From the NCBI GenBank assembly GCA_029953675.1, contig JAMWBK010000007.1, positions 372,001 through 436,000 on the forward strand: 64,000 bases of DNA. Direction: 5' to 3'. The notes under the pieces are model-generated. The model worked only from the letters and a program-made list of their open reading frames with translations, was not told where the DNA came from and did not search any database. This document shows positions 28,432-47,722 of this stretch, in pieces. How positions within the stretch are numbered: the first letter of the stretch is position 1; the number at the start of each line of letters is the position of its first letter. Origin of the DNA: Rhodosorus marinus CCMP1338. Taxonomy: Eukaryota; Plantae; Rhodophyta. Made by a program: the position numbers and the translations under genes.

Positions 28432-29163
28432 ATGAAAGGTATCGACGCGACGACAGGCACGAAGGAGGCGTGGTTGGAATCACGAACGAAGCTGCTTGCA
28501 AAAGAGAAAGAGCTGAATCGCATGAAGGATGAGGTCGCGAAGATGAGACGGGAGCTGCCCCTTGTTGAGGTTGAGGACTACGTATTTGAGACCAAGGACG
28601 GGCCGAAAAAATTATCAGAGCTTTTCGGGGTAAATTCACAGCTGATAGTCCAACATTTCATGTTTGGACCTGAGTGGGAGGAAGGATGCGTTTCATGCAG
28701 CTTCTGGGCCGATAGCTTTGATCCCATGGTCATCCACGTAAATCAACGCGACGCTAGCTTCGTTGCGAGCTCCAGAGCTCCCGTTGAGAAACTTGAGGCC
28801 TTCAAGGAGCGCATGGGTTGGAAGTTTGAGTGGGTATCCGCGCTGAACAACCGTTTCAACTACGATTTCAACGTCTCCTTTCCGAAGGAGGGGAAAGCGG
28901 ATGACACTGCAATATACAACTACAGACCGAAGCAGGGGGATTACGAGGAGCTGCCCGGAATCAGTACCTTCTACCTAGATAAGGACACCGGGAAAGTCTA
29001 CCACCAGTACTCCTCCTATGCACGTGGCCTTGACGTACTCAATTCTGGTTACCAGCTTATTGATCTTCTTCCTAAAGGCCGAGACGAGAAGGACCTCCAG
29101 TGGAGCATGCAATGGCTCAAGAAACACGACCAATACACCGAGAAGCCCGTCGCATCCAATTAA
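28432..29163 (+). CDS. DUF899 family thioredoxin-like protein (bacterial-type), intronless
   Basis: LLAKEKEL..RRELP, QLIVQHFMFGPEWEEGCVSCSFWAD, VASSRAP, RMGWKFEWVS, FNYDFNV, YSSYARG, DLLPKGRDE. Confidence 0.88.
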   Translation: MKGIDATTGTKEAWLESRTKLLAKEKELNRMKDEVAKMRRELPLVEVEDYVFETKDGPKKLSELFGVNSQLIVQHFMFGPEWEEGCVSCSFWADSFDPMVIHVNQRDASFVASSRAPVEKLEAFKERMGWKFEWVSALNNRFNYDFNVSFPKEGKADDTAIYNYRPKQGDYEELPGISTFYLDKDTGKVYHQYSSYARGLDVLNSGYQLIDLLPKGRDEKDLQWSMQWLKKHDQYTEKPVASN

Positions 29164-32671: not shown

Positions 32672-34189
32672 CTACTCCACGGGGCTGTCTCCAAATAGGT
32701 TCTGCCTCGCGAGCCGGTCAATTGCAGTTTCTTCCTCGTCAAAGTCGCTCTTGCTTATAACGCACTTGAAGAGGTATCCCCAGTCTGGCCCAAAGTTTGC
32801 GGGACTGTAGAAAGTGTACCAAAACCGCCGCTGAGGGATGACCACCTGAAGTGCCGGCGTTTCTTCAATACGTTGTGATCGCTGCTGTCTCTTCTCAAGA
32901 TGAAGTGAGAACACTTTTCGCTGCTCGTGCTCGTCGAGGAAAAAGCATAGATCAGAGTACTTTCCAAGTGAAGTTTGGGTATCAAAAGTGACTGTGATCT
33001 CTCGGCACCAAGCAGGGAATTCGACGACCCGCTTGGAGAGCTGCATGGTCAGGATGCAAAGTACGCGTCAGTTGCTACATGCGAGGGATTATGGGATAAC
33101 TATTGAGCCAGAACTTACAGAAGCAAGTACACCTGTTGGGTGAGGGTGGTCGGACTCGATCATGGCCACCCTTCGCCGCGTCCTCTTCGCTACCTCCGCT
33201 TTTTTCGAATACAAAGCTTTCAAACCCGCAAAGCCAAGAACAGAGTCGTAGCGGTACCTCTCGATAATCTCCCCGGTGGTAAGTAGGCCGGACGGTTCGA
33301 CCTCACGAGCGAACAGGCAGGGGTCGATGTCGTAAATTCTCAGCAGCCCAGGCCGGACAAATCTTGCGACGCTCTGCAAAATTCTTTCTCTATCTCGTTC
33401 CTGAACCTCTCGCAACGATTGTTGGGGAATAAAAGAGTTGGCCATCCCCCAGCGAATCACCGCATGCCACAGTTGTTCTTCCGTACAGGACAGGTCCTCG
33501 AGCTGGAGCAGAAACTCGAGCACTTCCGGCCGCAAGCGACTGAACTGCTTCGTACCAACTACTTTATGAGAATTAGTTCGAAAGCAGTCCGTGATAACCC
33601 TCATCAAACCAAGACGCGGATTCTGGTGCGCTTGGTCCAGGAAGAAAATGCAGTTGCGCTCTGAGAGCTGCGTAGTAACATGCTTCCGACAAATTTCAGC
33701 CAAGGAATCCGCTCCAAGCCGCACCGCAAAGTCCCACAGCGAGAAGACGCGCTTGTCGCTGACCCTGATTTTGCCGGTGTAGAAGAACTCGACAACGGCT
33801 GAGGCAATAGTTGGACAAACATCAGTCCAAGCCCACTTCAATTGTCCTCTATTCCCTTGTTTCGCGTCGAGATCTATCTGCTTCCTTAAACCCGTGCACC
33901 GTGCAGCAATGAGGACCTTGTGCGTTTGGATCTCCACCTGCTCTTCCCCGTGGGTGACTGAAATCGACAAGTCCGTATCGATTCCTAATAAATACAGCTC
34001 ATGAACCCTTTTCAACAAGGCTCTTTTTGAGCTCAAAACACGGACTTCATCCCGAGGTCTGGAAAACGCTTCGCTTTTTCCCCAGTCACCTCGGCCCAAC
34101 CTCAAAGTCTTTCGTTCTCCAGACCACTCCGTCAGGAGCACCGTGTCGCTCACAGTGCTCCGGAGAACCTCCATCCCCAACGCTCCCAT
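32672..34189 (-). CDS. BTB/POZ-BACK domain protein with C-terminal CUB-like (ESxHP) domain (2 exons)
   Basis: THKVLIAARC, AVVEFFYTGKI, LAEICRKHVTTQLSERNC, CTEEQLWHAVIRWG; C-terminus IESDHPH..ITVTFD..DWGYLF. Confidence 0.85.
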
Positions 34190-34452: not shown

Positions 34453-36213
34453 TCAGGTTGTCCATTTCTGTTCGCCAGTTAGCAGTATGTCGAGGATGGT
34501 GTCGCTAGTGGCAATCGTTCGCGAGGGAAGAATTCGCAGGAGTTTCTTCGAGGCGTAGTTTTTCTCGTCGAGGATGAGGATGGTGTCAGATTCCTCACTC
34601 GGCTTTGGCGGTGTTAGCTTGCCTCCTGCGAACTCGATCAGCATTTCCAGATGGAGCCGTTCGGGCTCCGGGTTGGGGAAGTCGCCAACCAGCGCAAAGG
34701 AGGTGCTGTTGAACACCGGCGGCAGCGATCGTCGCCTTTTAATGTCAAATCCTACAGGTGTAAACTTTTCTTCGTCCAACCAGCGCCCCTCTTTGACGCT
34801 GTCTGCGAGCCACTCCTCGCGAACGATAAACTTACTTCCAGCGAGAGCAAGCATTATTCTTATGGATCGGTATCTTGCAGCGCCCCGCTTATTGACTCCG
34901 CTTATCACGTGCGTTACTTGCTTCATAGATTCTACACTTTCGACGACTTCGGCTCCCATGTAGTGACACATGCGCTTCATTAATTCCATCTCTTTGTGAT
35001 CTCGGATATTTGTGAATGCGATCGCCACTCCCGGACAAGCAGCTAGCTCGGACGACCGGCAACTAGGCTTTTCCGTCGGCCTCAACCAGGATATTGGAAC
35101 CGAAATGAGTCTGATCGAGTTTTTCGAGTCAATCTCATCGCTCGAATGGCTTGATGCAATGGCTGGTTGCTTCCGCGGCAGCATGTCTTTTCTCTCTGTG
35201 GTACCATCAACTCCCAGGATTACAGACAGAGAGGGAAAATCGGAAACGCTGTCTGCGTCTGAACAGCCATCAGCAATATCCTCGTCGCTGCTCACGATTC
35301 TCCGCTTGGCCGGCCGTCGAAAGACCTGTTCGTCCTCGTCGACTACTGAGCTCATTTCAACAATCTCGTCTTCCTCACCTGTTTTTTCTGGTTTCGTTAC
35401 CAACAGCCTCCCATCCAGCTCTATATTGGACACAGCGTTCCCCTTGTCTCCTGATAGCTCTTTCCTTCCGCAAGCTACCTCCTGCTCCCTCAAACATGCA
35501 TCCTTACCGGCGTCCAGCAGTTCGGATGCTAGGTTTGCAGGTCTAGGTGACCTCTTGCATTCATTTACAATTCCCTCAGTATCAGAAGTATCAAAACTTT
35601 CGGGTCCATGTGATAGCTTCCGGTCACCATTCGTGGCGGGTTCAGATGGCCTACTCCTTGCAGATGACCTCTTGCATTCATTTCCACCGTCTTTTGCAAT
35701 TCCCTCAGTAGCATCAAAATTTTCTGGTTCCTGCGAAAGCTTCCTGCCACCACTCTTGGCTTGTTCAGATGGCTTACTCTTCGCAGATGACCTCTTGCAT
35801 TCATTTCCACCGTCTTTTTCGATGCCCTTCGTAGTATCAGAACCTTCGGGTCCTTCTAGCTTCTGGTCACCACTCTTGGCGGGTTCAGATGGCCTGCTCC
35901 TCGCCCTGCCCACGACCACTCTTACCTCACTCTCCAGCCGCAAGAATCCCACGAGAAGATTTCGCAGGTGCTTATTCTGAATAAGATCCCTCGGATACGC
36001 AGGCAACTGACACGCTGGACACTTATCGCTTTCCTCAACGGCGGGCTTCACACACTCAAAACAAAAACTGTGATTGCACGAATCGATTCGGTACGGGTTC
36101 GCCAGAATCTCCCCACACAGGTAGCACCGCAATGTACTCCTGACCGTTTTCAACTGTTCTTCAACATTCGATAAAATCGTCTCCATTTCTTCTCCCCCTA
36201 CCCCCCTCTCCAA
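34453..36213 (-). CDS. BRCA1/BARD1-like RING and tandem BRCT protein, single long ORF
   Basis: RING CYLCGE..CNHSFCFECV..CPAC; BRCT VTHVISG..IMLALAGSKFIVREEWLADS; second BRCT FALVGDFPNP..LIEFAGGKL. Confidence 0.88.
   Translation of the reverse strand: MERGVGGEEMETILSNVEEQLKTVRSTLRCYLCGEILANPYRIDSCNHSFCFECVKPAVEESDKCPACQLPAYPRDLIQNKHLRNLLVGFLRLESEVRVVVGRARSRPSEPAKSGDQKLEGPEGSDTTKGIEKDGGNECKRSSAKSKPSEQAKSGGRKLSQEPENFDATEGIAKDGGNECKRSSARSRPSEPATNGDRKLSHGPESFDTSDTEGIVNECKRSPRPANLASELLDAGKDACLREQEVACGRKELSGDKGNAVSNIELDGRLLVTKPEKTGEEDEIVEMSSVVDEDEQVFRRPAKRRIVSSDEDIADGCSDADSVSDFPSLSVILGVDGTTERKDMLPRKQPAIASSHSSDEIDSKNSIRLISVPISWLRPTEKPSCRSSELAACPGVAIAFTNIRDHKEMELMKRMCHYMGAEVVESVESMKQVTHVISGVNKRGAARYRSIRIMLALAGSKFIVREEWLADSVKEGRWLDEEKFTPVGFDIKRRRSLPPVFNSTSFALVGDFPNPEPERLHLEMLIEFAGGKLTPPKPSEESDTILILDEKNYASKKLLRILPSRTIATSDTILDILLTGEQKWTT
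35548..35905. repeat. Three in-frame coding repeats (period 117-123 bp) in the BRCA1/BARD1-like linker
   Basis: TGACCTCTTGCATTCATTT recurs at 35548, 35665 and 35788; the peptide unit is (R/K)S(R/K)PSE.A..G..KL....E..D...GI...NECKRS. Confidence 0.9.
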
Positions 36214-36451: not shown

Positions 36452-36494
36452 CATATATATATTTATATATATATATATATATTTATATGTATAC
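36452..36494. repeat. (AT)n microsatellite
   Basis: ATATATATATTTATATATATATATATATATTTATATGTATA. Confidence 0.9.
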
Positions 36495-37017: not shown

Positions 37018-39076
37018 ATGGAGCAAGGAATCAGAGAACGAGGGAGGAAGGGCAGAAGACGTTGGACCGGCAATGGGTATCGGCTTGAGAAGCTTGATTA
37101 TGCGGTGGTGTTGTTGATCGCCTTGGGGATACTAGGAGTGATCGTATTGCTTCGGTCCTCAACAGATGAACTGCAGACAGGAAGTTCGAGTGAGTGCAAT
37201 AATCTCTTGATAGCGATTGGACTTCAGGATGGGAACTTTCTGCTTCGGCTGGTTGAGGGAAGTGACGAGATCACGTCGTGGATGAACGACAACGAACTGA
37301 TTTCGAGCTCGTTGTGCGTCGAGGGATTTGATTTCCACGATCACTATCGCGAGCGATTATCTACGGTCAAGGCTGCCGTGTTGGAGTCTCTGGCCTCGCT
37401 TCGGATAAACTTGAAGACGGTCGCCTTGAGCTACAACGGAAAACTTGCAGTTGAGGTCAACAACAAGCCCGTGGACAAGTTCACATCAGTCGTAGATGAC
37501 AAGTATGTCGCTATTAACTTTGAGAAGAGCTTTCGGGGAAGACTAACAGAGACGAAGACGTTGCCAGTAGTTGACATGCTGGACCTTGCTGAGCGTCGGG
37601 GGGTTGAACCGGACGGGATTGTCATTGTGAGGTTCTCGGGGAGCCCTGAGGATGCCACCTCGTATCTGCGGATGTTCCTTGCGGAGCCGAGACTGGGCCG
37701 TAGAGTAAAGCTCTTGAAGCTGGAACTGCACAGCGCACCGACTTACCTGGGCGGTGCTAGGTCTACAGGTCAACAGCCAGGGGGGAAGAACGAAGTGGAA
37801 AAGCTGAGGCGCATGCTGCTGAGTATGGACGACTGTATAACTGAAGTCATTATCGTTGAGGAAGAGAACTACAGGGAGCCTCCAAAGGAGGACAACGGCT
37901 TGTTTTATGCAGTTCTGGCGGGACACGCCACGTGGACTGCCAGGGTTGACCCGGCGCTGAACAGTTGGTTGAAGGGCGTCAACTACGGCAGAGCTGCGAT
38001 CTTCACCAATTTTGGGATAAAGCCCGGCTCCATAGAAGCTAAGGCCCTGAAAAACCATATCGCAGTGGTTGCAGCACCTGCGCATCCAGACAGCGAGGGG
38101 ACTCTGAGCCTCATGCAGTCCTGGAGCCACCTCGTGCGATTAAGAGCTTCCTGGGATCTGTTCATGAAGCAAGATACCTCGCTGAAGTACCTCATTCTGC
38201 TGGACGACGACACTTTCCCCTTCACGGATACGTTTGAGGCTGTGTTGCGGGAGTGTATGGATCCTAATGCTCTCGAGTGGGGCGGTTCTCCAGAATCAAT
38301 CCGCGTGGATAACGGTGATGGTCCGATTCACGGGGAAGCGCTGAGACAGGCCAACTTGAAAGGTGAGATGTACCGCTTGAGCGCATTCCGACCATTGAAT
38401 GAATTGCATTCTGCTGCGTTTGTCCTTGTGACTGCTCGAGAGAGCTCACGATGAGACTTTCATAATCATTTCTGTGTTTACAGCGGGGGGTAAGCGTTGC
38501 CGTTTTCCTAATGAACCGAAAGAGCGGGGTGTCCCGAACTGCAGGACTGTGCTTTGTCCGAGTTGTCCGAGTGTTCCCCAAGGAGGCATGATAGTTGTGA
38601 GTCGAGCGCTTGTGCAGCGACTTCGACCGCACATTGAGAAGTGTGAGCGCGATACGCAGGACCTGTGTGACCATTGCGGCTCTCAGCGGCTGTATTTTTG
38701 CGTTCACGAGCATGCGAAGGAGGCCAAGACCTCGAATCTGCGAGGCGTTTATCGCACCCCGTGGATTGGAGAAAAGCATACAACCTCAACAGAATGGCAC
38801 GGATATCCGCTCTCGCTGCACGGAATGAAGTCCACAAACCCAAAGTTGCACCACGCGACTGTATCTTTGGACTTCAACGAGCTCTACGACCTTGCTCTGC
38901 GGGCTCGGCGACGCAGTGCTGCCGATGCCGGCGAACCTTATGTATTGATTGAGGATCTACATTTCGAGATTACCTGCAAAGGGATGGGCTACTTTCGTCA
39001 TGGAAAATGCTATTCCAGGCTAGAACCGCACAACTTTTGGTGTCAAACATCCTCGTATACGTGGAAACCGAAATAG
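37018..39076 (+). CDS. Type II membrane Fringe/GT31-like glycosyltransferase with N-terminal FkbM-like domain, paralogue 1 (2 exons)
   Basis: TM AVVLLIALGILGVIVLL; LFYAVLAG, YLILLDDDTF (DxD), WGGSPE; exon 2 QGGMIVVSRALV..DLCDHCGSQRLYFC; intron about 38365-38500. Confidence 0.82.
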
Positions 39077-40350
39077 GTCGGTTCTCGCTGTACATGGCGA
39101 AGGGACCATAGCCTTTCGATCTCAGCAGCAGGGGGCGAAGGTGGACGCGCAGCTCTCCTCGTTCATCCCGAATTCAACTGCAGAAAGTTACATTGGACCC
39201 TGCAGGATGATCTGCTTCATCTGCTTGACAAAGGCGTGACTGACGAGGATAAGGCCAATCGTAGACGGAGCACGGATGCTTTGCTAAAGACTCGCACTTG
39301 GGGTCGAGGTCACACTGGTATCGACCGAACATCCCAACACATGTACTCTGGACGACGGCGTGGTGCAGGGCATTTTAACTCCCAAACAGCTAATTGTTTC
39401 AACCGATAAGAATCTTGTATAGATCAGCACGGAAGAAGAAACCGCCACTTTTACTTCATTGTCGGACCTGTAAAAAACTTCTTCTCAACCCATCTGACAT
39501 CTTCCGGTCAACCCACCAGCTCGGCGCTAGCTGGGATCTCATCTTGAAGCCGCGGAGGACATAATCCTCCTGCTTCTTTCCAGAGTCTGTCCTTGTACAG
39601 TAACCGTGCTCAGTGTTTTCGGCCACCAACTTCATGTTTGTCTTCGTCTGTAGCTCTGGGGCCTTGCTCAAACCTCGACAGAGCTCAGGCGGTCGTTTTG
39701 CTTGCTCGTTCCTTTTGTGAACCAACCCTAAGAGCTAGTTTCCAAACAGTAAGATCGGTTCGGCTGCCGATCCGTCTGGAGCAATTAGATAGTACGGTTC
39801 AGAGTACTAATTGAAACGATCTGAATGCCATTCATGGCTTCATCTTCCTCCTCGAATGTGAAGGTCATCGTCTTCAACGGAGCTTTTTGATCCGAGGAGA
39901 GAGAGAGGCTTTGCTTGGGGAGTTTCGGAGGTCAAGATAAAAGCGACTTCGGCAGAAGAAGCTCCTGGTTGAAGTGACGTAACCCCTGAACGGCGAGTTT
40001 CGTCAGCTTTCTAGATAACTCTTGGATTAGAGCTGATCTTCAACAGGAGAGTAGCCTTGCAGAGAGTGGATCGTAGGGGATTCATAGGTCTTTCAGAGGT
40101 TGTCCTCTTCGAAGTGGAGTGAAAAACTGATTTCAGTGCTCCTTTATTTGATGATGACGACCCAGCTGTTGAAGTGGATCAATTTGTTTGGGTTTGGGAC
40201 GATGACCTGAACGGCTTTTTGTTTTGGAGGACTCTTTGTGAGGGGCAGCCCAACTGTTTGGGTTTGAGAATCTGTTGAAAGAGATTTAGAAAGAGTTTGG
40301 AAAGGCACTGAAGGCGAACGAGGGTTTTGAAAGCCGTTAAGACTGTTAAG

Positions 40351-42464
40351 ATGGCTGGTGATCAGCAGACCAGAACGGCTGGGAACAAGGGATCTAGGAT
40401 GGCGGTAAGTAGACGAGTTGAGGATTTCTGGAAGGCGCTGAGGACGTTTCAGAAGAAAACGTCCTCCGGAAAATTCAGCTTTCTTGGTATGAGAGGTGGT
40501 ATCTTCTCGGTGTGGGTGTTAATCTGCGCACTGTTAGTGTTCTTCGGGCTGCGGTTGGGAAGGAGTCCCAAGGTGATCGCTACTGTTGTCGGGGCCCGGT
40601 GCCCATATCTACTGGTTGATGTTGGAGTCCGGGGAGGCGATGATTTGCTGGACTTGGTTAGTTCTGGGGGTATTCTGAAGGGATTCAGCGATGCCACTGG
40701 AATCAGCCCGGGGGAATTCTGTGTAGAGGCATTCGAGGCCGACGAGGGTTACTCTGACCGACTCAGGGAGGTGGAGAAGATTTTGTCTCCAAGCTTACGG
40801 AGCATCAAAGTACACCTCCAGTCCACGGTGGCCAACTTCAATGGCGAGGCTCCTGTAATGTTGGAAAACGTAGCAGCGGCGTTCCGCAGATCGGAATCTG
40901 TGAATGGGGTTGCGACGTATAACTGGGAGGCTACCGCGAGTTCTGATCGAGAGCATCGACTATCGAACATCGCTTTCCAAGATTTGTGGGACGTTCTCAA
41001 GCGCAACGGAGTCACAAGATACAAGAGTTGGAGTGCGGCTCGAGTGAAGAGCACATTCAGTGACGCCGGGATGTACCTCCGAATGATTCTAGGAGATCCC
41101 AGGCTATGCAATGCTCTAGATGAGATCTTCATGGAGATCGTCCATGGCGACGACTTGGTGTCGCAGAAGAGGAGCGATTTCATCCCGGAGGACGTTGAAT
41201 CGGAGTTGGAGCTTCTCGCGGATCTGTTGAAAACCGCCAGCTTGTGCACAACAAAGGTTTCGATCAGATACAACCGAATCGCAGATGCCGCCGGAAAGGA
41301 GGACAAGATCTTTTATGCGGTTTTAGCGGGAGCCAAGACGCTCAGTACGAGAGTGTGTGCTTCGACGAGGACGTGGATGAGATCCGTTCCCCACAGCAGC
41401 ATCGCCATCTTCACCAACACCGAGTTTGATGTGAACGACCACAGTTTCAGGTGCCTAGGAGGCCACATGGGTGTTGTCGCGTCGCCCGCTCAACCCGATG
41501 GCGAGAAAGTCCTTTCTGCAATGCAATCATGGAGCCATCTTGTCCGTCTGAGACTTGCGTGGGATCTTCATATGAAGGACGATGCATTTAAGCAATATCT
41601 GGTGCTCATGGACGATGACTCCTTTGTATTTACCGATACGCTTGAGGCGAATCTAGTGGCGTGCATGAGTCCCAAGGCGCTGCACTGGGGTGGGGCTCTG
41701 GAATTTATTCGTATTGACAACGGTGACGGTGGTAGGGACGGGTTTGGCAAGGATCTGAGAGAAAAACAAATCAAAGGTGAGCTTGTAAACAATGGCGATA
41801 TACTCTGCAAGCTGGTGTAGCCTGCTCAGGATTGTTCCTTTCGTTTCTCATTTCCGTTGCCACAGAGAAAGGAGAGAACTGCTACTTCCCTGGAGAACAA
41901 GCTAAGCAAGGCGAGAAGCCCTGCGACCAAGTCTTTTGCAAAAGCTGCAAGGCAATACCGCAAGGTGGGTTTGTCGTTTTGACCAGGGCCCTGGTGGAGG
42001 CATTGCGTCCGCATATTGAAGACTGTGAAAGGGAATCGCTCGATCTCTGCGAGCGATGTGGTTCGCAGAGGCTCTACTTTTGCGTGAATCGGAAATTGGG
42101 GGATAAAGGCGTGGAGCTTTCAGGCCTGCGCGGTGTGTATCGGCAGCCGTGGAAAACCGAGTTTAGCAGCCTGGTGGGAACCGCGTGGCATGGATACCCG
42201 GTATCAATTCATGGCATGGTTGAGGGATCATCAAAATTACACAAGGGCCTGCTGGAAGATGACTTTGCTGAGCTCTACGCGCTTGTAAGAAGAGCTCGGA
42301 GGCGATCGGCAGCCAACGCAGGGGACGCCTATGTCACCGTTGAGGACATGAACTTTCAAATCGTTTGCGACGGGCTGGGTTACTTTCGCAATGGGAAATG
42401 TTATAGAGCACTGACTGGCGCGAAGAACTGGTGCAATACCGCGGCTTATACTTGGACGCCTTAG
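40351..42464 (+). CDS. Type II membrane Fringe/GT31-like glycosyltransferase with N-terminal FkbM-like domain, paralogue 2 (2 exons)
   Basis: TM VWVLICALLVFFGL; LLVDVGVRGGD..FCVEAFEAD..LDEIFMEIVH; IFYAVLAG, YLVLMDDDSF, QGGFVVLTRALV; the intron sits at the same position (after LKG/IKG) as in paralogue 1. Confidence 0.85.
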
Positions 42465-43530: not shown

Positions 43531-43877
43531 ACATGTAATAAATTTATAAAATACAGATATATGTTTGGAGACTTTGAGTTTTCGTATTAATTAGATAGAA
43601 AATGGAAAGCGCGGGGGATGAAGTCTTTTGGAGGCCAAGAAGACTAGGCTTTTAGAGATGGCACTTTGATGAAGATGATCGTCTACCTCTGCTTGGGAAG
43701 GAATCTGATCGGTTGGATTGGAAGAGGTTTCGTACTGATGAAGCCTATTGATTTCTTACTATCGATACAAAAAAAACCAGATCTTTGCTGATATCTTGGA
43801 AAGTTTGTTCCGCGGTTTGTTGTTGACGTGAGAGCCTGTGCGGTAGAGCGGAAGTGCCCGGGAGCTGTTGTTCTGGG

Positions 43878-44654
43878 ATGGCCGGTCGATGGAGTTTAAA
43901 AGGGAAGAAGGCGTTGGTAACTGGCGGCACAAAAGGAATTGGCAAGGCGGTTGTTAATGAATACGTTCAGCTTGGTGCTCAGGTATTCTTGACCGCGAGA
44001 ACTGAGCGGGACGTTCTGGATGTCGTGGAGAGCTATGGGTCTGGGAATGTGTACGGGGTTGCCTCAGATGTGAGCACCAAGGAAGGCTGCGAGAAGCTGA
44101 TTGCAGAGGTGAACAGGGTATTTGATGGAGAGCTGCATGTTCTCGTGAACAACGTCGGAACGAGTATACGGAAACCGAGCGTGGAGTACATGGAGGAGGA
44201 ATACGACATCCTTATGGATACGAACGTGAAGAGTATGTTCAGATTGTGTCAAATGGCTCATCCCATGTTGAAAAAGGCAGGAAGTAGCTGTGTGCTCATG
44301 AATTCGTCCGTTGCTGGAATGGTTGCTTTGAACTCTGGGGCGATCTACGGGATGACGAAAGCTGCATTAAACCAGCTCACCCGAGCGCTGTGTTGTGAGT
44401 GGTGTGGCGATGGGATCAGAGTCAATTCGGTGTGTCCATGGTACACCCGAACACCTCTCGCGGCTCCCGTCATTGAGGACAAAAAGCGTCTGGGAATCAT
44501 CCTCGCCAGAACACCAGCGGGCAAGGTCGCTGAACCCGAAGATGTCGCCGCACTCTTTGCCTTCTTGGCTATGGACTGTGCCAAACACATAAGCGGCCAG
44601 AGCGTTAGCGTGGACGGTGGCTTCACTGCCAATGGAAATTTTACTTTCTCATGA
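43878..44654 (+). CDS. Tropinone reductase-like short-chain dehydrogenase/reductase, intronless
   Basis: RWSLKGKKALVTGGTKGIG, LVNNVG, YGMTKAALNQL (YxxxK), IRVNSVCPWYTRTPL, ISGQSVSVDGGFT. Confidence 0.93.
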   Translation: MAGRWSLKGKKALVTGGTKGIGKAVVNEYVQLGAQVFLTARTERDVLDVVESYGSGNVYGVASDVSTKEGCEKLIAEVNRVFDGELHVLVNNVGTSIRKPSVEYMEEEYDILMDTNVKSMFRLCQMAHPMLKKAGSSCVLMNSSVAGMVALNSGAIYGMTKAALNQLTRALCCEWCGDGIRVNSVCPWYTRTPLAAPVIEDKKRLGIILARTPAGKVAEPEDVAALFAFLAMDCAKHISGQSVSVDGGFTANGNFTFS

Positions 44655-44878: not shown

Positions 44879-46012
44879 TTACTCGGATTTCCTATTCCCC
44901 CTTCGTTTTACGGTCCTTATGATCATCGCGTCAGTTTTTGACAACGTTTGTGACCTCCAGGTTCGGGGAATAAGCCATCCATCGCTCGCTATATACAAAC
45001 TTCTCTCAATGCGACGGAACACCTGTTCTCTATCCAGGACATGGTTCCAGAAGTTTCCCACACAATAATTATCCGTTTGTACATCGGCTCTCGAATCGTA
45101 CCTTGAGAGCGATCCGAGTAGCCCAAACTGTCGAATCAATCCGATCAGAAAAGGAGGGCTGTCTATAGTAGCCCATCGATTCAATTGCGGCAGAATGGCC
45201 ATCAAGGAGACGAACATGACGCAGAAAGCCTCGAGAGCAAGATTGTTCGGTTGCCATCCAGCAAGGATGGTCAGGATTGGAATGGAAACCAGGCAATGAT
45301 TTCCTACGTTGATGAAAAAGTCATCCTTCGTCTGCTCCGCCGATGTCCTGTACCGGATGGATCCAAAATGAGCCTGTGCACTCTTTTCGGTGAGCTGGTG
45401 GGCATTGGTTCGCGACCTACCTGGAATTCGATGATCCCTCCACTGCCTGTTTTCTCTGGGGTTTCCTGTACTGTGAATGCAGTGTCCTCGCCTTTTGGAT
45501 CTCCGAACCAACGAACGGGGTTGCCCTAGATCCGTAGTTATGTGCAAACCAGTAATACAATCCGCTGGACAGGTCCGCGAACACGAAGGCCGCGCTGGAT
45601 CCGAGCAGTACCTGTTTTTACAGCAGAGAACCTTCAGTAAGTTCGTAGCAAGTAAGATGCATCCAAGGCTGAAGTTGCTTCTTACTAGGAAGAGATCTAA
45701 ACTACATTCCACGCGCTCGAAGATGTCCAGGACGATCAAATCGGATAGGTAATCCGCGAAGATAACGATTCCTCTAAAGACGACACCTTCCCTTCCTGAG
45801 ACGCCCACGACTTCGGGATGGTCCGAAGCCACCTCGTCCTTCTTATGCTCCTCCTTCACGGCTACATCCGAAACAAACTTCGAACGGTCAGTCTGCACCC
45901 TCGGCCGCCTCACTCGAGTCTGCGGACCCACAACAACACAAGTCGTCGTAGTCCTGACCTGTACTCTCTCGCCTCTGCGACCCGCCGCAATCGACCCCAC
46001 AAACCCCATCAT
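44879..46012 (-). CDS. Plastid FAD4/TMEM189(Kua)-like protein with degenerate histidine boxes (3 exons)
   Basis: Transit peptide MMGFVGSIAAG..; spliced exon 2 ADLSSGLYYWFAHNYGSRATPFVGSEI; exon 3 NYCVGNFWNHVLDREQVFRRIE..IPRTW parallels FAD4 NYCIVSG.WN.vLD...F..lE..PRsW. Confidence 0.75.
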   Translation of the reverse strand: MMGFVGSIAAGRRGERVQVRTTTTCVVVGPQTRVRRPRVQTDRSKFVSDVAVKEEHKKDEVASDHPEVVGVSGREGVVFRGIVIFADYLSDLIVLDIFERVECSLDLFLVRSNFSLGCILLATNLLKVLCCKNRYCSDPARPSCSRTCPADCITGLHITTDLGQPRSLVRRSKRRGHCIHSTGNPRENRQWRDHRIPGRSRTNAHQLTEKSAQAHFGSIRYRTSAEQTKDDFFINVGNHCLVSIPILTILAGWQPNNLALEAFCVMFVSLMAILPQLNRWATIDSPPFLIGLIRQFGLLGSLSRYDSRADVQTDNYCVGNFWNHVLDREQVFRRIERSLYIASDGWLIPRTWRSQTLSKTDAMIIRTVKRRGNRKSE

Positions 46013-47722
46013 ATCTAACCCCACAGCTTCTCCCAACCTAGTTAACCTCCCTCATCCATCCTCAGACCTCCCCCTCGTCCTCACAGCGACATCAACCTCT
46101 CCCCAACACTCCACAAAAGTTCCAACCCGAAAAAAAACAAAACACACGCACACCAAACAACAAACCCAACAGTCCCCCAACGCTCCTCCAAATCCCTCCA
46201 CCCTCACACTACACCCTCCACCCCTCCCACCACGCCCTCCACTCACCCCCCACCCCCTCCACTCACCCCCCCATCCCGCCCAAAACCCCCCACCCCCCCA
46301 ACCCCTTCCCTTCCCTCCCCCGAAAACCAGTTCCTTCCTACCTACCAACATCCCCTTCCCACCTCTCTCCCCATCCAAACGAGACAATACCCACACCTCA
46401 CCCTCACCCTCACCCTCACCCGCACCCTCACCAAACACAAACAAAAAAAGTTTCCTTCTCCATCCTCTCCCCCCACCACCTCCGCACCCCCTTATAAAAT
46501 ACCCATTACCATATCAAAAACAAAACTTCCAGAAGAAAAAATCCATAAACACAAATTTTTTTATCCTCACCTTTCTCCCCCCTCCCCCTCTTCCTTCTCT
46601 CCTCTCCTTCTCTCCTCCTCTCCTCCTTTCAAAATGTGAAAATCCACACCACATCGTCGATCCCCCCAAAAAGGGGATATTTTTATTAATTTTAAGTTCC
46701 TCACGACCACATCTTTTAACAGTCTCAACACAAGTGAAATCGTCTTTTTCTCTCCGCTTTTTAATTTTTTCTTTCTTTGTTCATCAAAGTTCCCCTCCCC
46801 CCCCCCCCCCGCTCTCTTTTTTTTTTTTTCGGAGGGAGTCAGTGGGAATGAGAGGACCTCACCTTCATTTCAATGCAAATTAGAGGGTGGTGATAATCTA
46901 AATTTTTTTTGGAGGAGTCTGGATAAAACTTCAGATAATAAAGTAGTAAAATAGATAGATATTAAGTAATTTAATTAAGTTTTCTGTTTTTAATCTATTG
47001 CGATCTGATAAATAATATTTTGTATTTAATGTATAAGTGATTGTGGAAATTGGGTTGGCCTGGAAGGGGTTAATAGATTTACGATTGTGGTCGCGTTGGG
47101 TTTCTAGTGGGTGGAACAGGGGGTGGAGGTGGAAATAATATGTACATGTTTTCGGATACGTTTTGAAGGATTAGACATATTTTAGGTGGTGGAATGAGGG
47201 GTGATGATTGCGGAGAGTGCACGGGATTTTGAAGGAACTGGAAGGGGGGGCGATTTGTTGGGTGGAAAGAGGTAGGATCGGGAATTTATGTGTTTTTCTT
47301 GAAGATTATTTTATTTTGTAGTTCTGGGAAGCGTATTTATATTTATATGTTGATAGAGTCGGGTTTTTATTAACAAATTGTTTAAGGACTAGTGTCCTTC
47401 GGAGGTCAAGTTGGATGGGTTTCTGGTTGGACTGGAGATCAAAAGGATTTCCACCTATCGATTCTCTGGTGCAATTGATAGCGTAGCGTTAGGGTCGGAA
47501 ACCGGGGGGGGCGGGTTTGTTGGGTTGAGGGTTTTCTTGCCTGGACGGGGACCCATAGTTGGTGTTGTTTTCATCCAATGCGGGTTTGTAGTTGTCCTGA
47601 TATCCATACCCAATACTCGTGAACACTATCCTGTCTCGTTTCCACTGCGCTGAAGCAGACCATTTTCTCCCTCAACTTAACTTGCTTCCTCCTTTTAGCT
47701 ATCCACTCTCCTCACTCCAAAC

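Follow-up and report, generated by a model that had tools for sequence, protein, structure and literature searches.

A tandem gene pair in Rhodosorus marinus encodes putative Golgi glycosyltransferases with a degenerate FkbM-like domain

The locus described here raises the question of what is done by a membrane protein that carries, on one polypeptide, a domain resembling sugar methyltransferases and a domain resembling glycosyltransferases (GTs). Two such proteins are encoded side by side in a 64-kb stretch of the Rhodosorus marinus genome, which was analysed as a whole and is called the window; coordinates are window positions, on the plus strand unless stated. A preliminary description of the two genes had proposed an enzyme family that both builds and methylates glycans. 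Our own reading, to which we would give a probability of about 60%, is that the proteins belong to a family of red-algal Golgi glycosyltransferases whose active site is unusual and which carry a pseudo-methyltransferase as an accessory domain. The fusion proteins probably build sugars and do not methylate them.

The window has a G+C content of about 50%, and its genes are eukaryotic and intron-poor. The two genes in question have two exons each and were built from a listing of open reading frames (ORFs) and by reading of the sequence: ORFs 37018..38454 and 38474..39076 make up gene 1, and ORFs 40327..41820 and 41832..42464 make up gene 2 (exon and intron boundaries are given in Table 2). The spliced products, paralogue 1 (p1, 645 amino acids) and paralogue 2 (p2, 674 amino acids), are free of frameshifts and internal stops, and splicing brings gene 1 into a frame that aligns with p2 and with a Bangiopsis protein (P0010). 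For gene 2 the first ATG was taken as the start; an alternative, Met17 at 40399, is the start used by the MMETSP orthologue mentioned below. The two proteins align from end to end with 40% identity over 624 amino acids (E = 7e-149), and their phase-1 introns interrupt one and the same codon of the alignment, directly behind ..ANLK (gene 1) and ..KQIK (gene 2). The genes are thus tandem paralogues with a common intron position, as they had been described. A tblastn search within the window found no copies beyond these two.

In each gene, both domains lie within one uninterrupted exon-1 ORF. The product of gene 2 is 100% identical to P0001, which is listed at NCBI as 'hypothetical protein NDN08_004333 [Rhodosorus marinus]' (class Stylonematophyceae), and a MMETSP transcript from a second Rhodosorus strain (P0002, 86% identical to p2) reads across the splice junction and covers both domains. 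The spliced 645-residue p1 was not found in the protein collection, which held only the unspliced 478-residue ORF (P0003) and a p1-like protein of 460 residues that also looks unspliced (P0012). Public records may lack an annotation of gene 1 or carry a wrong model of it, in contrast to gene 2.

Named members of the family come from four red-algal classes, the Stylonematophyceae, Porphyridiophyceae, Bangiophyceae and Florideophyceae, and are found in Rhodosorus (three paralogues, the third being NDN08_004686), Bangiopsis, Purpureofilum, Porphyridium (two paralogues), Timspurckia, Pyropia, Chondrus, Gracilaria and Agarophyton. Among the named members none lies outside the red algae; many other matches come from metagenome or read-assembly contigs. 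The clade that contains Chondrus, Gracilaria and Agarophyton (the P0008 clade) comprises 45 proteins, all of which have both domains. In a neighbour-joining tree of the C-terminal domains, p1, p2, the third Rhodosorus paralogue and the Bangiopsis protein cluster together, which points to a tandem duplication that is old but took place within the Stylonematophyceae.

The relationships of the family to known enzymes are not apparent from simple searches. A first homologue search returned only seven proteins, all from red algae or from metagenome and read-assembly contigs, and a word-indexed search with an alignment of the N-terminal domain (A2) gave zero matches, probably because low-complexity Pyropia rows swamped it. 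An exhaustive HMMER search of 1.84 billion representatives with a full-length family profile (A1) yielded 70 matches of three kinds: two-domain relatives; about 40 stand-alone proteins of 250-320 amino acids that match only the N-terminal domain (profile positions ~42-297); and a few proteins that match only the start of the C-terminal domain (positions ~308-448). Because the family profile pulled FkbM-domain and Fringe-domain proteins out of 1.84 billion representatives, the likeness to these two groups is far above chance. Standard domain models either overlook the family or half-detect it.

The C-terminal domain had been described as Fringe/GT31-like, and both profile and structure comparisons agree with that assignment. 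Neither p1 nor p2 matches the Pfam Fringe model (PF02434) directly at its gathering score of 21 bits. The members from Chondrus, Gracilaria and Agarophyton pass this threshold at 28.2-33.3 bits, and florideophyte orthologues are already auto-named 'Fringe-like protein' or beta-1,3-galactosyltransferase, a point that the preliminary description missed. More distant matches to the domain hit PF02434 with E values of 1e-12 to 1e-23, and one of the distant matches hits CHSY3, B3GLCT, C1GalT1 and Manic Fringe in the PDB. An hhalign comparison of the core family profile with Fringe-like proteins gave a probability of 99.4% (E = 1.5e-21), and a 26-sequence profile that includes the Fringe-like proteins (A5) reaches CHSY3 (E = 2.5e-13), B3GLCT, GfsA and Manic Fringe in the PDB directly. 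The AlphaFold 2 (AF2) model of the p2 domain has a predicted local distance difference test score (pLDDT) of 87 and a predicted template modelling score (pTM) of 0.88. When this model was compared with the PDB by Foldseek, ranks 1-38 were all GT31 structures, namely CHSY3/CHPF, B3GalT5, B3GNT2, GfsA, Manic Fringe, B3GalT6 and C1GalT1, with E values of 9e-10 to 1e-5 and target-normalised template modelling (TM) scores of up to 0.64.

Comparison with the published GT31 motifs I-V and with GT-A landmarks indicates which parts of the active site have been kept. Motif I is kept in part, as RVxxxxx(T/S)W with an invariant Arg and a near-invariant Trp. Motif II, (F/Y)(V/L/M)xxxDxD, is present; the last two Asp of its DDD are invariant in A5 and the first is conserved in at least 90% of sequences, and DDD occurs in 45 of the 45 P0008-clade proteins. 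The GxxYxxS region of motif IV is also kept in part, reading GGxxVxx(S/T), with Tyr replaced by Ile or Val, and its Gly-rich loop takes the form PQGG at the strand's N-terminal end. A candidate metal-binding His near the C-terminus lies in a column with at least 90% conservation, which is aligned with SFHH or (S/T)FH of Fringe-like proteins, an assignment made by alignment and not from geometry. Motif V, (E/D)DVxxGx(W/C), is absent. At its position the family has an invariant C-G-S-Q-R-L-x-x-C, of which only the terminal Cys is shared with the motif, and the Ser is aligned with the base Asp by MAFFT, by HMMER (against CHSY3 and GfsA) and by hhalign, which the preliminary description did not mention. 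In the p2 model this Ser stands at the start of the helix that comes after the Gly-rich strand and its helix, which is the location of the xED motif in GT-A enzymes. The Asp of motif V is the general base in GT31 enzymes (D333 in B3GNT2, D335 in GfsA). Two more basal relatives, P0031 and P0032, have Glu at the Ser position (TEQRL).

The family resembles the GT31/Fringe group (Manic Fringe 2J0A, B3GNT2, B3GalT5/6, C1GalT1, B3GLCT and the N-terminal GT31 domains of CHSY3/CHPF) in its GT-A fold, its best structure matches, its type II topology, the (T/S)W that ends motif I, the DxD, the Gly-rich loop, the C-terminal His and the motif V Cys. It differs in that its core members have Ser for the motif V Asp, in that a Cys-rich insertion of 50-90 residues with an invariant DNGD lies between motifs III and IV, in its own invariant SWSHLVRLR segment, in a whole extra N-terminal domain and in that p1 and p2 fall below any Pfam detection. 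The insertion occupies the region where GT-A enzymes bind the acceptor. Further invariant residues of the family fall in SWSHLVR, DNGD, PQGG and GSQRL; within the P0008 clade, DNGD and CGSQRL are each found in 44 of 45 proteins. The nearest relative in motif V is the Aspergillus fumigatus beta-1,5-galactofuranosyltransferase GfsA (PDB 8YRL), a two-domain GT31 enzyme that ranks sixth among the fold matches and whose PGDQKLGQC is closest in sequence to CGSQRLYFC, down to the Gly that stands where the first acidic residue would normally be. GfsA, however, keeps the catalytic Asp335, and its extra domain is a beta-sandwich rather than a methyltransferase fold.

Because the donor-binding half is intact and strongly conserved, we infer that the C-terminal domain is a working glycosyltransferase with a remodelled catalytic centre. 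The conservation of an active-site-like surface across four red-algal classes likewise suggests that the domain is functional, and it would be expected to bind a uridine diphosphate (UDP)-sugar and a divalent metal.

The topology of both proteins fits a type II membrane protein of the Golgi or secretory pathway, and type II membrane proteins are what had been predicted. Each has a single N-terminal hydrophobic segment, preceded by a tail rich in Lys and Arg (9 K/R against 3 D/E in p1; 11 K/R against 3 D/E in p2) and followed by a Cys-rich remainder with 15 cysteines in p1 and 18 in p2. The extreme C-terminus forms a Cys-rich tail of the form C-x-G-x-G-Y-F-R-x-G-x-C-Y...W-C...Y-T-W-x-P, found here only in the Rhodosorus and Bangiopsis members; in the p2 model it is of low confidence (pLDDT 51-64).

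The N-terminal domain can be traced to the FkbM methyltransferases (Pfam PF05050, Methyltransf_21), as had been suggested. Direct matches at the gathering score of this model (22.7 bits) were obtained for neither p1 nor p2 (hmmscan, E up to 10). The stand-alone relatives of the domain, which include proteins of the red algae Galdieria, Compsopogon and Madagascaria and others from contigs, are named 'Methyltransferase FkbM domain-containing protein' in the source records, and seven of the ten that were scanned exceed the gathering score (P0037, P0039, P0041, P0043, P0044, P0045 and P0047, at 24.7-36.1 bits). An hhalign comparison of 13 fusion N-domains with 24 stand-alone proteins gave 99.7% probability (E = 9e-26) over 213 columns. 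An alignment of both groups (A4) has three invariant Cys and one more, the 'LC' cysteine, that is nearly so; these plausibly form two lumenal disulfides. Modelled with AF2 from an alignment of 29 sequences, the p2 N-domain shows strands alternating with helices (pLDDT 80, pTM 0.79). The best Foldseek match of the model in BFVD, a database of viral predicted structures, is the unnamed G4YCM0 (E = 8e-9, TM 0.63), followed by proteins named as FkbM methyltransferases from Homavirus, Tetraselmis virus 1 and Solivirus and by other viral methyltransferases; of the best 14 matches, 12 are methyltransferases or the unnamed top match (E from 8e-9 to 1e-2, TM 0.31-0.63). The expected Rossmann-type methyltransferase fold is thus upheld by FkbM proteins in BFVD and finds no significant match in the PDB (best TM 0.40). 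A phmmer search of the PDB with a stand-alone FkbM-like protein (P0043) also returned nothing. Taken with the model, the evidence shows the domain to have an FkbM-type methyltransferase fold by descent.

The closest known counterparts of the N-domain are membrane-anchored FkbM proteins such as GAYE_SCF54G6212 of Galdieria yellowstonensis and A0A7S1TIS3 of Compsopogon caeruleus, with which it shares homology over its whole length (hhalign 99.7%), the conserved cysteines, an N-terminal hydrophobic anchor and the predicted order of strands and helices. These proteins differ from the fusion family in lacking a GT domain and in keeping all the FkbM signatures (DxGxNxG, FExNP, GSS, KxDxEGxE and ExH). 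A hydrophobic anchor, all FkbM motifs and the same cysteines are likewise present in stand-alone proteins of about 300 amino acids from Galdieria (P0036, P0037), Compsopogon (P0039/P0101) and Madagascaria (P0045).

In the fusion proteins these signatures have largely decayed (Table 1). The counts cover 24 stand-alone relatives, the first 13 fusion proteins and 44 further proteins of the P0008 clade, which gives 57 fusion proteins in all; the roles of the motifs were taken from family conservation and general knowledge of class I methyltransferases, as no useful paper on an FkbM crystal structure was found. The motif strings quoted in the preliminary description (LLVDVGVRGGD, CVEAFEAD, VHLQSTVANFNG, LDEIFMEIVH, AIGLQDG, DDD, PQGGxxVxxRAL and the Cys-rich tail) are all in the sequences, KxDxEG is indeed lacking in both copies, and paralogue 1 has lost the acidic residue of motif I, where it reads AIGLQDG.

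Table 1. Retention of FkbM signature residues in stand-alone and fusion proteins (number of proteins with the residue)
Motif	Stand-alone (24)	Fusion (first 13)	P0008 clade (further proteins)
Motif I, D-x-G-x-N-x-G	D 23, G 24, N 22, G 21	acidic 8, first Gly 6, Asn 0, last Gly 13	39 aligned: Asn 0, last Gly 39
Motif II, F-E-x-N-P	E 24, N 23, P 21	acidic 13, N 0, P 3	44: acidic 42, N 13, P 29
G-S-S loop	last S 23	missing or deleted	
Strand 4, K-x-D-x-E-G-x-E	D 24, E 24, G 21, E 23	D 0, E 0, G 0, trailing acidic 9	44: D 0 (N 32, S 11), middle E 4, G 0, trailing E 39
Strand 5, E-x-H	E 24, H 23	E 5, H essentially lost (at most shifted in p2)	44: E 1, H 0

The decay is accompanied by faster divergence. 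Between p1 and p2 the N-domains are 25% identical and the GT domains 52%; when p2 is compared with the orthologue from the second Rhodosorus strain, the values are 81% and 90%. By these protein identities the N-domain changes at roughly twice the rate of the GT domain. What can still be recognised of the N-domain in Porphyridium and Timspurckia is its C-terminal part, the N-terminal half being undetectable. A metagenome scan turned up distant loci only (36-40% identity).

Class I methyltransferases hold S-adenosylmethionine (SAM) with the motif I loop and an acidic residue of strand 2, and their methyl-transfer site is lined by strand 4. Because the signatures of strands 4 and 5 have been lost family-wide, methyl transfer by the N-domain is unlikely, and the domain would no longer be a methyltransferase; it may still bind SAM or S-adenosylhomocysteine (SAH) through the surviving half-site. 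The proposal of a glycan-methylating enzyme is not supported by these data, in that the D-x-E-G signature is gone from all 57 fusion proteins and the His of E-x-H is essentially lost, while both are kept in 21-24 of the 24 stand-alone relatives. The caveat attached to that proposal, namely that one or both methyltransferase domains might be non-catalytic, is the better reading and extends to the whole family (strand-4 Asp and Gly in 0 of 57). The methyltransferase-like domain of these proteins is not in itself evidence for methylation, and the family cautions against reading 'methyltransferase' from a fold.

The searchable literature gave us no description of a fusion between GT31 and a decayed FkbM domain. 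The earlier remark that no described protein of this architecture was known accordingly holds, the sources calling the proteins 'hypothetical', 'unnamed' or 'Fringe-like'. Fusions of a GT with a sugar methyltransferase are already known, and it is the combination of GT31 with a decayed FkbM domain that appears to be new. The chlorovirus PBCV-1 protein A064R consists of two GT domains and a C-terminal methyltransferase domain, and all three activities have been shown biochemically. It resembles the red-algal proteins in having glycan-building GT and sugar O-methyltransferase domains on one polypeptide, but it is a soluble viral protein with another domain order, other GT families and an active methyltransferase. 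Two further fusions were noticed outside the window: P0038 (591 amino acids) joins Nucleotid_trans (PF03407) to an intact FkbM-like domain, and P0021 (739 amino acids) joins the GT domain of the present family to a Glyco_transf_25 domain.

We suggest the following scheme. The working part of the protein would be the C-terminal GT31-fold GT-A domain, which would bind a UDP-sugar and a divalent metal by way of DDD and the C-terminal His and would move the sugar onto a lumenal glycan acceptor. Catalysis would be non-canonical, with an invariant Ser in place of the motif V Asp base and with the invariant, Cys-rich D-N-G-D insertion at the usual acceptor site. The N-terminal lumenal domain would be descended from a membrane-anchored FkbM-type sugar O-methyltransferase and would have lost methyl transfer, because the signature residues of strands 4 and 5 and the motif I Asn are gone. 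It would have been kept as a disulfide-stabilised accessory module, whether as a stem, as a surface for oligomerisation or partner docking, or possibly as a ligand-binding site.

Several observations weigh against this scheme. Pfam hmmscan of p1 and p2 up to E = 10 returned 0 families, and PDB sequence searches with the full protein and with each domain, by phmmer and with 7-sequence family profiles, gave nothing significant. Foldseek comparison of the N-domain model with the PDB found no structure at E <= 1e-3, the best matches being nucleoside hydrolases at a TM of about 0.4. The GT domain is without the canonical general base, Ser lying on GfsA D335 and B3GNT2 D333, and may be inactive; the assignments in both active sites come from alignment, not from residue-level geometry, and the Golgi location is deduced from topology. 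Finally, the strand-2 acidic residue is kept in nearly all members and F-E-P-(D/N)-P occurs in many P0008-clade proteins, so that SAM or SAH might still be bound.

There are three other ways in which the locus could be explained. In one, the proteins are bifunctional, with a C-domain that adds a sugar and an N-domain that uses SAM and non-canonical catalytic residues to O-methylate either the product or the acceptor. This would suit the homology of the N-domain to FkbM methyltransferases and its fold, the retention of the strand-2 acidic residue (13 of 13 and 42 of 44 proteins) and the invariance of one motif I Gly. O-methyl sugars are, moreover, constituents of red-algal wall polysaccharides. 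They are also carried by the N-glycans of the red alga Porphyridium, and a review of microalgal N-glycans mentions no methyltransferase, so that the enzymes are apparently still to be identified. The characterised fusion A064R and the intact P0038 are precedents for such an arrangement. However, strand 4 has lost its Asp and its Gly in 57 of 57 fusion proteins and its middle Glu in all but 0 of 13 and 4 of 44, against retention in 21-24 of the 24 stand-alone relatives, even if a trailing acidic residue is often left; the E-x-H His and the motif I Asn are gone, several clades have a deletion of the GSS loop, the domain diverges about twice as fast as its neighbour, and half of it can no longer be detected in Porphyridium and Timspurckia. 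We therefore regard a bifunctional enzyme as very unlikely.

It is also conceivable that both domains are dead and that the protein acts as a lumenal scaffold, chaperone or lectin-like partner with a regulating or stabilising effect on another, active GT or methyltransferase. GT31 enzymes are known to have pseudoenzyme partners, Cosmc with C1GalT1 and CHPF with CHSY, in which a degenerate catalytic-fold domain is likewise kept for a non-catalytic stabilising or partnering role; the decayed module there is a GT31 paralogue on a separate chain, whereas here it is a methyltransferase fold in cis. In every core member of the family Ser stands in for the Asp that is the canonical GT31 base, the motifs of the methyltransferase domain have eroded, and among the top fold matches in the PDB is CHPF, which is the partner subunit in the heterodimeric chondroitin synthase. 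Pseudo-glycosyltransferases such as Cosmc, however, lose the DxD motif, while the DDD, the Gly-rich loop and the candidate His are conserved in the red-algal family, many more active-site-like residues are invariant (SWSHLVR, DNGD, PQGG and GSQRL), and the Glu of P0031 and P0032 suggests a site that was remodelled, not abandoned. A wholly inactive protein is in our view unlikely, though it deserves to be kept in mind. The third explanation, that the fusion is an artefact of the gene models, the domains lying in separate genes or one copy being a pseudogene, could appeal to the missing spliced product of gene 1 and the unspliced ORFs in the protein collection. We consider its probability close to negligible, given the single exon-1 ORF that carries both domains in both genes, the intact reading frames after splicing, the transcript-derived P0002 and the recurrence of the same layout in Pyropia, in Bangiopsis and throughout the P0008 clade.

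Beyond a red-algal glycosyltransferase family with a pseudo-methyltransferase accessory domain, a more far-reaching proposal can be made, which we think distinctly improbable. The proteins might form a GT31 subclass with a new mechanism, in which the base has moved to the DNGD insertion and in which the FkbM remnant, through what is left of its motifs I and II, binds SAM, SAH or a methylated glycan. The methylation state of wall or mucilage glycans would then gate sugar addition or be coupled to it, and the family could take part in beta-1,3-galactan or heteropolysaccharide synthesis. A role in that machinery is conceivable because the family is found in four red-algal classes, including producers of agar and carrageenan.

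The positions of the features are collected in Table 2. A functional link with the neighbouring genes was considered and rejected, as the RING-BRCT protein, the BTB/BACK protein, the short-chain dehydrogenase and the lipid-desaturase-domain protein are unrelated eukaryotic genes; the last three have no obvious link to glycan synthesis. The RING-BRCT coding sequence contains a 123-bp unit at 35582..35904, in 2.6 copies with an 80% match, which encodes 'SRPSEPAKSGD.KL' peptide blocks. The intergenic region upstream of gene 1 contains, at 36453..36493, an (AT)n microsatellite with about 20 copies. Farther away, an ORF at 28432..29163 (+) gives a full-length match to Pfam DUF899, 'Bacterial protein of unknown function' (E = 5.5e-81), an unexpectedly strong bacterial-type match for nuclear DNA of a red alga; an old gene transfer is possible, or the family may simply be widely distributed.

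Table 2. Features of the two fusion genes and their neighbours in window coordinates
Feature	Position	Strand	Remarks and basis
Gene 1 (p1) exon 1	37018..38362	+	codons 1-448 and first base of codon 449; ORF 37018..38454, GT donor at 38363
Gene 1 intron	38363..38483	+	121 nucleotides, GT..AG, phase 1; sequence reading
Gene 1 exon 2	38484..39076	+	ends at stop codon; ORF 38474..39076, spliced translation
p1 signal-anchor / transmembrane segment, residues 28-45	37099..37152	+	Kyte-Doolittle 19-residue maximum 2.69; sole hydrophobic segment
p1 degenerate FkbM-like (putative pseudo-methyltransferase) domain, residues 59-283	37192..37866	+	profile envelope, hhalign, motif counts
p1 motif I remnant LLIAIGLQDGNF	37204..37239	+	acidic residue and Asn lost, last Gly kept; reads AIGLQDG
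p1 motif II remnant LCVEGFDFH	37312..37338	+	acidic residue kept as Asp; N-P lost
p1 strand-4 region VIVRFSGSPEDA	37621..37656	+	aligned with VVVKMDIEGSE of intact FkbM-like proteins; D, E and G all lost
p1 GT31/Fringe-like GT-A domain, residues 290-645	37885..39073	+	spans intron; profile envelope, alignment A5, hhalign
p1 DxD motif DDD, residues 396-398	38203..38211	+	GT31 motif II, YLILLDDD; alignments A1, A5
p1 VDNGD motif	38305..38319	+	in insertion between GT31 motifs III and IV; D-N-G-D invariant in A1
p1 Gly-rich loop and strand VPQGGMIVVSRAL	38573..38611	+	counterpart of GT31 motif IV; aligns with HGGAGYxLS of Fringe-like proteins
p1 CGSQRLYFC at motif V position	38675..38701	+	Ser515 at catalytic-Asp position; three aligners agree
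p1 LSLHG, candidate C-terminal metal-binding His561	38810..38824	+	alignment A5
p1 Cys-rich C-terminal tail, residues 611-645	38969..39073	+	alignments A1, A5
Gene 2 (p2, NDN08_004333) exon 1	40351..41776	+	first ATG as start
Gene 2 intron	41777..41865	+	89 nucleotides, GT..AG, phase 1
Gene 2 exon 2	41866..42464	+	ends at stop codon; ORF listing, sequence reading, spliced translation
p2 signal-anchor / transmembrane segment, residues 51-67	40501..40551	+	Kyte-Doolittle maximum 2.46
p2 degenerate FkbM-like domain, residues 83-308	40597..41274	+	profile envelope, hhalign, motif counts, AF2 model
p2 motif I remnant LLVDVGVRGGDD	40609..40644	+	D, G and G kept, Asn replaced by Arg; reads DVGVRGG
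p2 motif II remnant FCVEAFEAD	40717..40743	+	Glu kept; N-P lost
p2 strand-4 region SAARVKSTFSDA	41032..41067	+	D-x-E-G likewise lost
p2 GT31/Fringe-like GT-A domain, residues 315-674	41293..42461	+	spans intron; AF2 model, Foldseek, profile matches
p2 DxD motif DDD, residues 421-423	41611..41619	+	YLVLMDDD; alignments A1, A5
p2 IDNGD motif	41713..41727	+	D-N-G-D invariant in A1
p2 Gly-rich loop and strand IPQGGFVVLTRAL	41955..41993	+	N-terminal end of model strand 195-204
p2 CGSQRLYFC at motif V position	42057..42083	+	Ser542 at catalytic-Asp position; three aligners; start of model helix 230-245
p2 VSIHG, candidate C-terminal metal-binding His591	42201..42215	+	alignment A5
p2 Cys-rich C-terminal tail, residues 641-674	42360..42461	+	alignments A1, A5; p2 model
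BTB/BACK protein	33089..34189	-	
BARD1-type RING and BRCT protein	34453..36213	-	upstream neighbour; Pfam scan
Short-chain dehydrogenase	43854..44654	+	adh_short_C2, E = 1.7e-54
Lipid-desaturase-domain protein	44879..46036	-	

Finally, we note what the family means for the study of red-algal glycans. The outcome is a useful correction of annotation rather than a new biological principle. The enzymes that make the wall and mucilage polysaccharides of red algae, and the methylated and xylosylated N-glycans of red microalgae, are largely without assignment, and a comparative survey of 2013 reported no plant-type GT31 orthologues or orthologues related to arabinogalactan proteins in red or green algal genomes. 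The intact, membrane-anchored stand-alone FkbM proteins are better candidates than the fusion family for the missing Golgi glycan O-methyltransferases of algae. The fusion family itself offers a naturally occurring GT31 active site that lacks the canonical Asp as its base, and its definition as a conserved GT31-fold family provides candidates for red-algal glycan synthases.

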